The translations under genes and the position numbers were made by a program. Under the pieces are notes generated by a model. That model saw nothing but the letters and a program-made list of their open reading frames with translations, was not told the DNA's origin and did no database searches. Below are positions 17,758 to 37,900 of a DNA stretch of 55,249 bases, in pieces; position 1 is the stretch's first letter, and each line of letters begins with the position of its first letter. Source of the DNA: Cyanophora paradoxa CCMP329 (lineage: Eukaryota; Plantae; Glaucophyta); the NCBI GenBank assembly GCA_004431415.1, contig QPMI01000678.1:1-55249 (forward strand), in the 5' to 3' direction.

Positions 17758-20700
17758 ATGTCGTCAGACGTGCTCGCACTTGTCAACTTCTACGCAAGAG
17801 AGGGCCTATACCGACATCTGCAGACGGTATGCTCGGAAGTGCTGAAGAAGCGGGCCGGAGAGCCCACGCTCATGTTCTGGCGCGCGTATGGCATGGTTAT
17901 GGAAGGTCTGGCGTCTAGCTGCGCGGCGGGCTCGCGGCTCGCGCGCAGGGTCCGTCTGATGTGCTCTGGCGCAGGGAGCGTGAACGAGGGCATCCGCGAG
18001 TATGAGCAGCTGCTAAACCGGAAGGAGATTGCCCTGGCCGTTTATGCCGGCCTGGCTCACGCCCACCAGAACAGCCGGACCGTTGGTGCGTGGGCCCTCC
18101 CACCTCATGGCCCTGCCGCCCAGCGCCGAAAGGGCCGCCCGCAGACCGCGAGGCGTTGCGGGACATGCAGTCGAGGATGCAGGCCGAGGAGCGGGTCGCA
18201 CCGGAGAAGGCGCTGCTGCAAGCGGCGACGCTCCTCTGGCACACGAAGAGCTTCGACAAGGCCCGCGACTACGCCAACCTGGTGCGTGCCGCGCGCCCCG
18301 CGCACGGCCTTGCGCGCCTGTCGCGGCGCCCCCCACCGACGCGCTGCGCAGGCGCACCAGCAGGCGCAGGGCGCGAGCGCGCAGGCGCTCATCCTGCGCG
18401 GCTGGATCGACCTGACGTGCGGGAAGCAGTCCTACGCGGACCGCGCGATGGAGTACTTCGACAAGGCGCTGGACGCGAGCGCGCCGTCGTCGTCGCCGGT
18501 CGGGGACGCGCCGGCGCCGCGCAAGAAGGAGCTCGAGGCGCTGCTCGGCAAGGCCAAGTGCCTCGAGCTCAAGGGCCAGTACGCCCCGGCGCTGGACGTC
18601 CTCACCCAAGTCGTCGTCTCCTACGGCTGGTTCCAGCCCGCCCTCACCGAGAAGGTCCGGCCCCCGCCGCCCTGCCCCGCGCCGCCCGCGCGGGCCCCGA
18701 GCCTTGGGCGCAGGCGAAGATCCTGCTGGCGATGAACAACTGGGAGGAGGCGCTGGAGACGGCGCAGCGGGTGCTGGCGAACGACGGGCAGAACATCGAG
18801 GCGCTGCGGGTGGCGGTGACCTTCGTGCTCGTCCGCGAGGCGCGCTACAGCGTCGCCGCCGCCCGCGCCGCCGACCTCCTCGACGCCATCGACCGCCTCG
18901 AGCCCAAGAACGCCATCGTGCGCCCCGCGCGGGGGCGTGCGGGCTTGGGGCGGGCGCCGCCTGACGCGGCCGGCAGCTGTACACGACGGTGGCGCGGCCG
19001 CTGGCGCGCATCGCCGGCCGCAACGCCGCCGTCCTGCAGCACACCGAGGCGATGCTCGACCGGGCCCGCAAGATCAGCCCCGACAGGCGAGGCCGCCCCG
19101 GCCCCCGCCCTCCGCCGCCCCGCGCTCCCGCACTGACGCCGGCCCGGGGGACCGCAGCGCGGAGGTCCTCACGGAGTACGCGACGCAGCTGCTGATGACG
19201 GGCAACCTGCAGGAGGCCGCCAAGGTGCGGGCCGCGCGGGCGGCCCCCGGAAAGAGTGGAGTAGCTCAGCGTTTTCGCGCGCGCAGGCGTTCCGGCAGGC
19301 GTCGAAGGTGGACGAGACGTCGACGGGGGCGCTGTACGGGGTCATCAAGTGCCAGATCCTCTCGGGCTCCCTCGAGGACGCCGCCCAGCAGCTCGAGTTC
19401 CTCTCCGAGATCCAGGCCCGCCCGCCCGCCCGCCTCGGCCCCCCGGGCCGGCCCCGCCCCACCCCCCGCCGCCTCGCTGACGGGCCCCGCCGCGCAGCAA
19501 TCGTTCGGGAAGTCGCCGGACATGGCGCTGCTCTCGGCGATGCTGGCGTGGCGCAAGGAGCGGAACGCGGAGCAGGCGGGGCAGCACCTGAAGGAGGCGC
19601 TGCGGATGCACACGCAGTCGGTGAAGGGCGTCCCCATGGGCCACGACTTCTTCGTGCAGTACAACCCGGACTTCATGGTCGAGATCGCCCGCGAGTACCT
19701 CCAGCACAGCGGCTCGGAGCCACTCGAGGCCGGAGAGCAGGCCGGGCCCGCCCTCCGCCTCGCCATCTCCTGCCTAGAGCAGGTCATCCAGAAGGTCCCC
19801 GGCCTGCTGGACGCCCAGCTCACCCTGGCCCGCGCCCGCTACATCGCCAACGACACGGACGGGGCCCAGCGGACGCTCGCCGTCGTGCTGCGGCTGGAGC
19901 CGGCGCTGGCGGACGCGCACCTGCTGCTGGCGCAGATCCTGCTGAACCAGGACAAGTTCAAGCAGGCCGGCCAGGCGCTCGAGCAGGCGCTCGCGCACGA
20001 CTTCGGGGTGCGGGACGTGCCGCCCTACCACCTCATCAAGGCCCGCGTCGCCGAGGCGCAGGGCGACCTCGAGGGCGCCCTCAAGATCCTCGAGGGCGCC
20101 TTCGGCCTCCCCGGCGTCCGCACCGCCGGCCGCGGCGGGCCCGCCTCGGCCTCCTTCAAGCGCGCCGAGAAGGCCGGCGCGGCGGCGGGGAGCGGGGCGG
20201 CGAAGGCGCCGCAGCCGGTGACGCTCCAGGACCGGGCCTCGATCTACCTGGCGCTGGCGCGCGTGCACACGCGGCTCAACCACATCCACGAGGCGACCAA
20301 GGTGATCGGGGACGCCCAGCACGAGTTCAAGGGCACCACGGAGGAGACGCGCGTCACGATCGCCAGCTGCGAGCTCGCGCTGCAGCGGGGCGAGGTCGAG
20401 GCGGCGCTCTCCATGCTCCGCTCCGTCCCCGCCGAGTCCCCGAGCTACGTCAAGGCCCGCACGGTGATGGCGGACGTCTACCTGAAGCACCGGAGCGACC
20501 AGCGGGCGTACAAGGAGTGCTACCGGGAGCTGGCGGAGCGGACGCCCACGCTGCAGAACCTCGTGGCCCTCGCCGAGGCCTACCTGCGCGTGCAGGAGCC
20601 CGAGCGCGCCATCGAGACCTACGAGAGCGCCCTCAAGCGCTTCCCCCAGGAGGCCTCCCTCAAGTCCCGCATCGGCCCGCCCCGCGCCCCGCGCCCCGCG

Positions 20701-34900: not shown

Positions 34901-37900
34901 CCGTCTGGAGCTGTGCCTGACTCGCGGGGCAGGGCCACCGGCTGAAGAACAGCGAGGGGAAGCTCTTCCAGGCTCTCGTCGACTTCCGCACCGACCACCG
35001 CGTCCTCCTCACCGGCACCCCGCTCCAGGCCCGCCCCCAGCCGCCCCGCCCGCCCGGACTACTTCCTCGTTCGCCTGAGGCCGCCCCGCAGAACGAGCAG
35101 CGCGAGCTCTTCAACCTCCTCCAGTTCCTGGACCCCGAGAAGGCGCCCCGCCCCGCCCCGCCCCGACCCGCCCCCTCCTCCGCGCTGAGCCTTGCCGGCG
35201 CAGTTCCGGACCTTCGGGGACTTCCAGATGAACCTCGAGGGGGAGGACCGCGCCGTGCGCCCGCCCGCCCCCCGCCCCACGCCCCCTCCTCCCTTAGCTT
35301 CCGGGGCGTGCGCAGGGCCAGATCGCGCGGCTGCACGAGGTCCTCCGGCCCCGCATGCTCCGCCGCATCAAGAAGGCGCGCCGCCCCCCCGCTTCCCCGC
35401 CGCCTCGCGCCCCGCTGAGGGCGGAGCGGGGCAGGACGTGCTGGGCTCGCTGCCCCCCAAGGAGGAGTTCATCGTCCGCGTCGAGCTCACCCGCCGCCAG
35501 CGCGACATGTACAAGGCCCGCCCCCGCCCCCGCCCGCCCCGCCCCCGCTACCTCTCGGTCGTCTCGATTCCTCTAACCCGCCCGCAGAACATCTTCACGC
35601 GGAATTACGAGGCGCTGAGCAAGGGCGTCAAGCGCGCCGGCACCGTGCGCCGCCCCTCCCGGCGACATCCCCCCTCCTCCTCAATGCCCCCCGGGGTGTA
35701 CAGGTGGCCTTCGGGAACCTTGTGATGGAGCTGCGCAAGTGCTGCAACCACCCCTTCCTCTTCGAGGCGCCCCTCAACGAGGCCGCCGCCGCCGCCGCCT
35801 CCAACCCCGCCGGCCCGCCCCCGCCCCCTCCCCCTCTCTCCGACCTCTTCTGCCTCGAATGACGCCCCTCGCGGGGCGGGCAGAGCTGGACCGGCTGCGG
35901 ATCGAGTGGTGCGGGAAGCTGGAGCTGCTCGACCGCATGCTCGCCAAGCTCAAGGCCCAGGTCCGCCCCGCCCCGCCCCGCCAGCCCGCCCCCGCTCGCC
36001 CCGCTCTTCCCTTCAAGTCCCGGCGCTGAGCCTTACCCGCAGGGCCACCGGGTCATCATCTTCAGCCAGATGACGCGGTGCGGGGGCACGGGAGAGGGGC
36101 CCCGGCGCGGCGCGCTGCGGGGCGTGGCCTGACGGGGGCGGGGCGGGCGGGGCGCAGGGTGCTGGACATCCTGGCGGACTACTGCCGGGCGCGGGGCCAC
36201 GAGTTCGAGCGCCTCGACGGCGGCATCGCCTCCGCCGAGCGCCAGGCGAGCGAGCCCGCGCCCCTCCCGCCCCTCCCGCCCCTCCCGCCCCGCCTGATGC
36301 GCGGCGGCAGGCGGCGATCGACCGCTTCAACGCGCCCAACTCGCCCGACTTCATCTTCCTCCTCTCCACCCGCGCCGGCGGCGTCGGCATCAACCTCGCC
36401 ACCGCCGACACCGTCATCATCTACGACTCCGGCACGCTCCCCCCGGCTTCCCGCGTGGGCCCCCGCTGAGGCCGCGCAGACTGGAACCCGCACAACGACA
36501 TCCAGGCCCTGAGCCGCGCCCACCGCATCGGCCAGGAGCGCAAGGCGCGGCCCGGCCCCCGTCCCCCGCCCCGCACGGCCCGCGGCCTCTGAGCGCGCGC
36601 CGCGCCGCGCCCGCAGGTGATGATCTACCGGATGGTGACGCGGCGGACGGTGGAGGAGCGGATGGTGCAGCGCGCCAAGTCCAAGCTCACCCTCGAGCTC
36701 CTCCTCGTCAAGAAGCTCGACGGCGCCGGCCGCTCCATGAAGGCGCGCCTCCCCTCCAATCCAGTTAAAGCGGGGCGCCTCTGACGGGGCGCCGCCCCCC
36801 GCAGGAGAAGGAGCTGGAGGACATCCTGCGCTTCGGCGCGGAGGCCATCTTCGCCGAGGAGGCAGAGGCGGCCGCCGCCGGCGGCGGCGGGGGCCCGGGC
36901 GGGGAGGGCGCCGCGGGGGGTGCCGGGGGCGCCGGACCCTCCTCGGGGGACCCCGACAAGGGCGACCGCATCTACTACGACGACGCCGCCATCGACAAGT
37001 GCGCCCCTTGCGGATAGTCGCGGGGTCGAGCCCGGCCGGGGCCCTTTTCCCCCTCCTCCCCCGCCTTTCTCTCCCCGCCTCGTTACGGAGCCGCGCCGTC
37101 CGAGTACGCGGCGCGCGCTATTGGTTCGAGGCCAGATTCCCCCGCTCCCCCGACCCATCGCCCCCCGCCCCTCCTTTCCCCTCCCCTCTCCCTTCCTCCT
37201 CCCGCGCGGGGGCTCAGGTGCGGGGGCGCCCCCGCAGGCTGCTGGACCGCTCGCAGGAGGCGCTGGAGGAGAAGGCCGAGCAGGAGAACGAGTACCTCGG
37301 CTCCTTCAAGGTCCCCGCCCCCGGCAACCGACCCTCGAACCGGGCTGAGCGGGGCTTCGTCTCCCGCAGGTGGCGCGGCTGTGGCAGTCGCGGGCGGAGG
37401 GCGAGGAGGGGGAGGCGGAGGGCGACGAGGAGGACCTCGGCGCCCTCGACGAGGAGGCCGCCCCCGGCGCCGGCGGGAAGCGCCGCGGCCGCCGCCCCGC
37501 GGGGCGCCCCGCCTCCTCCTCGGAGCCCGAGAAGCGCTACTGGGAGTTCCTGAAGGAGGGGTACGAGGAGCTCCAGGCGCGCCGGCACGCCTCGATGGGC
37601 AAGGGCCAGCGCCGCCGCAACGCCGTCGCCAAGTACGCGGAGGGCGGCTCGGGCTCGGACTCGGAGGTGGGCGGCTCGGAGAGCGGGGAGAGCTTCAAGC
37701 CGGCGGCGGAGGAGGAGGAGCCGGAGGAGGTCGAGGAGGCGGCGACGGTGCGGGAGGCGGGGCGGGGCAAGAAGGCCGCCCCCGCGCCGCCGCCGCCCAC
37801 CGCCGAGTCGCTGGACTGGGAGAGCGGGCCGGAGCACCCGCTCCTGGAGGGGGCGGGGAAGGATGCGCGGGTGCTGGGGCTCGACACGAAGGAGCGGGGG

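Follow-up and report, generated by a model that had tools for sequence, protein, structure and literature searches.

Introns that begin with GC and end with AG account for 0.4-0.9% of introns in animals and Arabidopsis (PMC1557818), and human GC donors require both a G at the last exon position (-1G) and a G at intron position +5, while GT donors show a two-class pattern ascribed to U5 loop 1 versus the U6 ACAGA box (PMC11732430). Much higher shares are known from algae. In Emiliania huxleyi 56-65% of the donors are GC according to manual and RNA mapping (PMC4028052), and GC-AG introns make up 39.6% in Aureococcus anophagefferens and 22.2% in Micromonas pusilla, where their frequency was tied to GC content (PMC3033335); newer pelagophyte assemblies gave 14-17% (10.1101/2024.10.30.620910). 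The U1 5' end is canonical in Aureococcus and Micromonas, and the cause was termed an enigma in 2011 (PMC3033335). Here, the GC-AG introns of a contig of the glaucophyte Cyanophora paradoxa CCMP329 (QPMI01000678.1, assembly GCA_004431415.1) were analyzed; the whole stretch of 55,249 nucleotides (nt) is referred to as the window. A first-pass annotation of this DNA had proposed GC-AG introns at a frequency of about 40-55% in conserved genes and had pointed to elevated rates in some algae, with which the published values agree. In the literature searched (most subscription journals lie outside it) no report on GC-AG introns or GC donors in Cyanophora or other glaucophytes was found, and the term is absent from the Cyanophora genome paper (PMC6704402).

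The genome of C. paradoxa has a GC content of 67.6%, 9.2 introns per gene and a mean intron length of 86 bp (PMC6704402); the GC content of the window is 70%. In this one window 116 introns of 12 genes were curated by hand according to the reading frame. All of them possess +1G and end with AG; 89 donors are GT and 27 are GC, which corresponds to a GC-donor rate of 23% (confidence interval 16-32%). GC donors were found in the gene of the tetratricopeptide protein TTC21B/IFT139 (7/19, 37%), in a CHD-family remodeller gene (14/35, 40%), in lpxB (3/11) and in a gene labelled CFAP221 (3/11), and were absent from the 13 introns of a CatSper-like channel gene and the 27 introns of seven smaller genes. 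The richest regions were TTC21B and the ATPase part of the CHD gene (10/18, 56%). If the true rate were 1%, the probability would be 5e-10 for 7 of 19 and 8e-29 for 27 of 116. The proposed 40-55% therefore describes the two richest genes (37-56%), but not the window. The value of 23% may be an underestimate, since GC introns can be missed in poorly conserved stretches. The feature is real, and similar rates have already been published for other GC-rich algae.

Beside the donor dinucleotide, the introns have a uniform appearance. The length is 48-88 nt in 113 of the 116 introns, and T accounts for 11% of the last 17 nt upstream of AG, so that a T-rich tract is missing; both had been described correctly before (about 50-85 nt, no T-rich tract). 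None of the 24 introns with less than 70% GC has a GC donor, in comparison to 27 of the 92 above this value. With a genome of about 65-70% GC and more than 10% GC donors, the latter rate being that of the window only, C. paradoxa belongs to the GC-rich algae with abundant GC-AG introns. The ends and the removal from RNA are those of U2-type GC-AG introns, the RNA comparison covering TTC21B only. Minor (U12-type) introns were considered and rejected, because none of the 116 donors matches RTATCC or GCATCC.

The strongest evidence for splicing was obtained for TTC21B (17758-23101, plus strand; 20 exons). When its 19 introns are spliced out, a frame of 1351 amino acids (aa) with a single terminal stop results, in agreement with the seven GC donors claimed previously, and the long exons match TT21 ARM domains (ARM_TT21). 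A word search for relatives of TTC21B among candidates of up to 1129 aa gave no match. Four RNA-like runs from two studies contained 0.66 of the 31-letter words of the gene, while 0.650 is predicted for full splicing and 0.784 for retention of the GC introns. One gene-spanning contig per run (X15 record 2 and X17 record 4) was available, and the bases removed between the contig pieces (198, 59, 274, 202, 146 and 128) equal the model in each case. These lengths were taken from the table of contig pieces; the table of joints gave no RNA joints. The measured intron groups contain six GC introns, and the 202-nt group consists of three GC introns alone. Use of alternative nearby GT donors would add 11-37 nt, and no GT occurs within 40 nt of the donors at 19087 and 21876.

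In detail (a slash marks the junction), the introns 19087-19157 (ACAG/GCGAGG) and 19416-19497 (CCAG/GCCCGC) belong to the group of introns 5-8, which loses 274 nt. In a third study (X19) the 110 nt of exon 6 beside the former intron were covered as predicted, and a DNA run shows the same letter only; for the latter intron the DNA run agrees as well. The introns 20675-20745 (ATCG/GCCCGC), 20826-20886 (CAAG/GCTCGC) and 20977-21046 (CCAG/GCGCGC, DNA run in agreement) form the group 9-11, from which 202 nt are lost. Intron 21876-21948 (CATC/GCGCGC), which lacks the exonic G, is included in the 146-nt group, and X19 record 11 determines its ends with single-base precision. Intron 19 (22949-23022, CAAG/GCGCGG) fits the RNA depth in X19 and the DNA run, and residues 1330 and 1331 on both sides of it are contiguous in the solved structure of IFT139 (chain 8bda_E). 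In 14 DNA runs, which may derive from the source strain, 0.99 of the words of the gene were present. One of them (X2) spans the donors at 19087, 19416, 20977 and 22949 (4/7) and shows no alternative letter; the other three lie in skipped repeats. That these are RNA runs is only a tool's guess, and the intron-skipping contigs behave like spliced RNA; such contigs are blind to minor isoforms and retention rates. These observations show that the GC introns of TTC21B are truly spliced.

The CHD-family remodeller (PHD, chromo and SNF2 ATPase domains) was modelled from 31940 to 39150 on the plus strand, with an approximate start coordinate; the gene runs on to about 40300. The part 33568-39150 forms a stop-free frame of 1203 aa with 28 introns, 13 of them with GC donors, and in the ATPase region (34067-36804) the number of GC donors is 10 of 18, exactly as had been estimated. 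A homolog from another eukaryote (L001, P0001; run SRR26909563, 61% GC) aligns ungapped over ten of the GC junctions. These are 34858-34932 (VVDE/GHRLKN; stop if retained), 35029-35091 (TPLQ/N), 35143-35203 (DPEK/F), 35376-35434 (RIKK/DVL), 35516-35587 (MYK/NIF), 36246-36310 (AERQ/AAIDRF), 36432-36479 (YDS/DWNP, 48 nt; stop if retained), 36545-36616 (QERK/VMIY), 38428-38489 (GAAA/GCGCGT without the exonic G, low identity; stop if retained) and 38818-38871 (GIL/RHGH; stop if retained). The three junctions VVDE/GHRLKN, TPLQ/N and YDS/DWNP had been named in the first-pass annotation, and all ten intervals given there (seven in TTC21B, three in the CHD gene) start with GC and end with AG. At the position of TPLQ/N the homolog possesses a GT-AG intron (1910-1999), and its other visible introns are GT-AG, too. 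Thus, at least one GC intron of the CHD gene occupies an old position at which the donor differs between the lineages.

The remaining GC introns of this gene are 33345-33426 in the PHD finger (CPK/VYH; frame and PHD pattern) and three that were placed by the reading frame only: 35813-35883, where homology offers no fixed point, 36743-36804, where the homolog has a gap nearby, and 38573-38635, again without the exonic G. A GG donor at 38939 was replaced by a GT reading at 38936. An intron-like GT..AG segment at 33493-33562 puts the frame off by one; the region 33493-33567 was excluded from all counts, as the segment may not be an intron, its acceptor may lie further downstream, a weak GC donor at 33497 may be used or the assembly may contain an indel. 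With 239 nt, intron 36999-37237 is far longer than the usual 48-88 nt and has a second AG/GT-like site near its 3' end.

The GC donors outside these two genes, which had been ascribed to lpxB, CFAP221 and the CatSper gene, were found in the first two only. LpxB, for which a clean model of 410 aa was obtained, contains the minus-strand introns 45113-45194 (splitting the R codon of PGSR; the LpxB match in Pfam lies on another exon), 44500-44571 and 44287-44359, the last two placed by the reading frame. The same applies to 16382-16443, 15891-15942 and 15565-15640 (minus strand) in the gene labelled CFAP221; one exon of this gene gave no Pfam match, and the name was not confirmed. For the channel gene Pfam gave Ion_trans only, so that the name CatSper was not confirmed either. 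A stretch of it is 100% identical to the published protein eukprot:tig00021623_g23019.t1, whose 691 aa map exon by exon onto 50613-53993; gene names of this type (tig0021589_g22709) are found in the Cyanophora genome paper (PMC6704402). All 13 modelled introns have GT donors, and the published model concurs at these junctions; this count covers neither the last intron nor the 5' portion beyond 53580. A GC donor at 52828 was rejected, because it breaks the frame; the GT at 52826 is compatible with the frame and agrees with the published model. Frame changes at about 15690 in the CFAP221-labelled gene and at about 30400-30520 in the gene 29100-31400 (both minus strand) are maybe assembly indels or further introns, possibly with GC donors.

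GC and GT donors share the consensus G-Y-(G/C)-C-G-C, and the donors read (A/C)AG/GY(G/C)CGC, in agreement with the GYSCGC-like donors noted before. The two groups differ outside the dinucleotide. Exonic AG (-2A/-1G) precedes 21 of the 27 GC donors (78%) in comparison to 23 of the 89 GT donors (26%; p=2e-6), and it is combined with +5G in 18/27 versus 12/89 (p=2e-7). The combination of -1G and +5G was present in 21 GC and 39 GT donors, i.e. GC donors show the stronger match expected of U2-type GC-AG introns. Taken singly, +4C and +5G did not differ between the groups (p=0.4 and p=0.28), so that an additional reliance of GC donors on +4/+5, as proposed earlier, was not significant; +5G is needed together with -1G. 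GT donors in turn trade exonic AG against +5G, which is present in 12 of the 23 with AG and in 58 of the 66 without it (p=8e-4). The number of pairs to the canonical U1 5' end is similar (GC 4.3, GT 4.6; p=0.30), which indicates that positions -2/-1 make up for the missing pair at +2. At the other end of the intron, all 27 GC introns end with GCAG in comparison to 69 of the 89 GT introns (p=0.004), and the putative branch motif CTGA occurs in 23 GC introns (85%) versus 37 GT introns (42%; p=6e-5), as the suggested role of the branch point would predict. A motif CT(G/A/C)A(C/G/T), as is likely for a U2-type branch site, is present in 24 of the 27 GC introns; in all introns the putative branch motif is mostly located 11-27 nt from the intron end, with a median of about 17 nt for CTGA.

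When candidate sites were ranked with a matrix of positions -3 to +6 that ignores +2 (leave-one-gene-out, about 13 local GY candidates), the true site came first for 27 of 27 GC donors and for 35 of 57 GT donors. Curation might favour consensus-like GC sites; about 17 of the 27 GC donors were fixed by RNA or homology. The compensation persists among introns with more than 70% GC and in the four genes with complete frames alone, and where the intron GC content reaches 80% or more, 17 of the 26 donors with exonic AG are GC. Three GC donors lack -1G, one of which (21876) was fixed by RNA. Thus, C at +2 is tolerated conditionally and the position is not relaxed, contrary to the previous suggestion, in which the main compensation by -2A/-1G had not been mentioned. 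None of the 27 GC donors holds two of +3A, +4A and +6T of the animal and plant consensus GCAAGT; GT donors likewise lack the animal and plant intronic consensus, and its absence is a feature of the lineage. The earlier statement that a near-perfect donor is required elsewhere but not here accordingly applies to the animal and plant consensus only, and fails when the consensus of the organism itself is taken.

Most of this is probably explained by ordinary U2-type introns whose GT donors were converted to GC in a GC-biased genome, with a canonical spliceosome that tolerates +2C if the other signals are optimal. The short introns would be defined across their length, and few donor pairs (about 4-5 to canonical U1) would suffice. 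GT donors may manage with either exonic AG, contacted by U1 and U5 loop 1, or +5G, contacted by the U6 ACAGA box, and +2C would be accepted at donors that have both and are combined with an optimal branch site and acceptor. At all sites with such tolerance, T at +2 would then be replaced by C through GC-biased substitution, and the pairing ends of U1 and U6 would not need to change. The GC donors indeed co-occur with the best other signals (exonic AG, +5G, CTGA, GCAG and a C-rich stretch behind the donor), and the link of the donor to branch site and acceptor is in line with the network of contacts reported among +2U, branch A and 3' AG. Several points weigh against this explanation. The canonical U1 sequence used (see PMC3033335) is not that of Cyanophora itself. 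C is conserved at +4 (about 82%) and at +6 (about 72%), although at neither position does it pair with canonical U1 or the U6 ACAGA box. At 21876, the donor ATC/GCGCGC, which is fixed by RNA, forms only two Watson-Crick pairs with canonical U1. The GC-AG rate does not follow from GC content alone (PMC3033335), and the channel gene has GC-rich introns (0.84), yet 0/13 GC donors, which shows that GC content is not sufficient. In addition, the data comprise one window with 116 hand-curated introns.

The conserved +4C and +6C, the donor at 21876 and the channel gene leave a small chance to a changed spliceosome, which overall appears unlikely. In this case a modified major spliceosome (U1 5' end, U6 ACAGAGA box, U6 methylation, or U1C/Luc7/Prp8) would read the C-rich donor with +2C, +4C and +6C, or drop the proofreading contact of +2U, and accept +2C with about 2-3 canonical U1 pairs. 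Conservation of +4C and +6C in GC and GT donors alike and the three GC donors without -1G would fit, and tunicates offer a precedent, in which altered methylation of small nuclear RNA (snRNA) accompanies non-canonical donors (PMC13326754). However, +2 is not neutral, as every GC donor is the best site in its surroundings and this is not so for GT donors, U1 is canonical in other algae sharing the trait (PMC3033335), and +4C/+6C fit the C-rich flank common to all donors. No Rfam family, snRNAs included, was detected in the window. Another idea is a compositional code, C-rich at donors, G-rich at acceptors and extending into synonymous sites, that is read by RNA-binding proteins and leaves the dinucleotide a minor role. 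The C-G skew takes positive values around donors and negative ones behind acceptors, C accounts for 67% of the sequence after the donor in GC-donor introns and for 58% in GT introns (p=0.007), and at the four-fold sites of TTC21B the ratio of G to C is 105:28 up to 45 nt after acceptors and 17:106 up to 45 nt before donors. Since positions -3 to +6 alone rank 27 of 27 GC donors first and an extension to +20 adds little, and since a binding protein was not identified, such a code is improbable as the cause; it may well act beside the tolerance of +2C by a canonical spliceosome.

That a hairpin of a C-rich 5' arm with a G-rich 3' arm joins the intron ends and replaces sequence recognition is considerably more doubtful. 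The 5' half of GC introns is C-skewed (0.49), but the last 20 nt show no G skew, and whole introns are not folded more strongly than shuffled sequences (z +0.35 for GC and -0.24 for GT introns), GC introns even tending to be folded less than GT introns (p=0.02). The hairpin was rejected for this reason, with the test referring to overall energy and not to a specific end-to-end helix, and the role of RNA structure supposed earlier finds no support here. Structure-defined introns of the euglenid type were rejected as well, because the ends are GY..AG in 116/116 introns and excess folding is missing. Introner families with GC donors exist in Aureococcus and Micromonas, which would speak for recent insertions of introner-type mobile elements as the origin of the GC introns. 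This is hardly to be expected here: consensus and length are common to GC and GT introns, and the GC intron at 35029 shares its position with a GT intron of the CHD homolog (one position compared). Finally, an artefact, i.e. C as an assembly error at +2, use of nearby GT donors or retention of the segments, can practically be dismissed and was rejected for TTC21B. The assembly seems to hold a few frameshifts (near 33563 and at about 15690), but the DNA runs and the unequivocal letters in X2 speak against a wrong base, and the RNA contigs lose exactly the modelled lengths. With this, the circumstances that the first-pass annotation had named as refuting were checked for TTC21B and did not apply.

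Emiliania resembles Cyanophora in being a GC-rich alga with canonical AG, and has a majority of GC donors, which gene finders miss (PMC4028052). It differs as a haptophyte of an unrelated lineage with a higher rate and with GA donors (4% of the curated set), none of which were seen in the Cyanophora window, and with heavy intron retention, while the TTC21B contigs were spliced at every measured intron group. Aureococcus and Micromonas share a similar rate, a GC-rich genome and the link to GC content. Pelagophytes are, however, poor in introns (less than one per gene), whereas the genes of Cyanophora carry about nine short introns each (PMC6704402), and the position of at least one of the GC introns is old and shared. 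The GC-AG introns of animals and plants show the same compensation by better other donor positions and by -1G with +5G (PMC1557818, PMC11732430), but occur at about 0.4-0.9% instead of 23% and are GCAAGT-like instead of G(C/T)(G/C)CGC; in Cyanophora the compensation reaches the branch site and the acceptor, and a T-rich tract is missing. In Fritillaria borealis, too, many introns depart from GT-AG, but there 95% escape the rule, U2AF is duplicated and snRNA methylation is changed (PMC13326754). In contrast, +1G and AG are invariant in Cyanophora (116/116), and no change of the machinery has been shown.

With these results a glaucophyte that is intron-rich, culturable and provided with genome and RNA data joins the small number of GC-rich algae in which GC donors are abundant. 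The high use of GC donors is surprising in comparison to the textbook but expected in an alga with 68% GC, and offers a testable system for the tolerance of +2C. Thousands of these introns would allow a genome-wide measurement of the rule that +2C has to be paid for by an optimal exon end, an optimal branch site and an optimal acceptor, including the coupling of donor and branch site, which is not clearly shown by mammalian data. Furthermore, many junctions in the GT-biased gene models of the reference genome may be incorrect. Should the spliceosome be modified after all, Cyanophora would be the first example among Archaeplastida other than prasinophytes, and could help to explain the convergence of GC-rich algae on GC donors.

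Beside the main genes, several features of the window were observed. The genes at 12090-13220, 23700-25300 and 42850-43890 have introns with 56-65% GC and GT donors only, several of the GTGAG/GTAC type. Modelled introns are also all GT in a Mec-17-type acetyltransferase gene (41796-42047, minus strand) and in a gene at 46640-47880 (minus strand) that by eye resembles that of the histone stem-loop binding protein. The region 1-6000 is without introns, degenerate and by eye mobile-element-like; its minus strand shows a CCHC-like pattern at about 4370-4410. A low-GC stretch with short repeated motifs is located at 7500-11900 (45% at 8001-10000), with long C runs at 10430-10635, and the window ends with a tandem array of about nine copies of a 40-nt unit (54873-55249).

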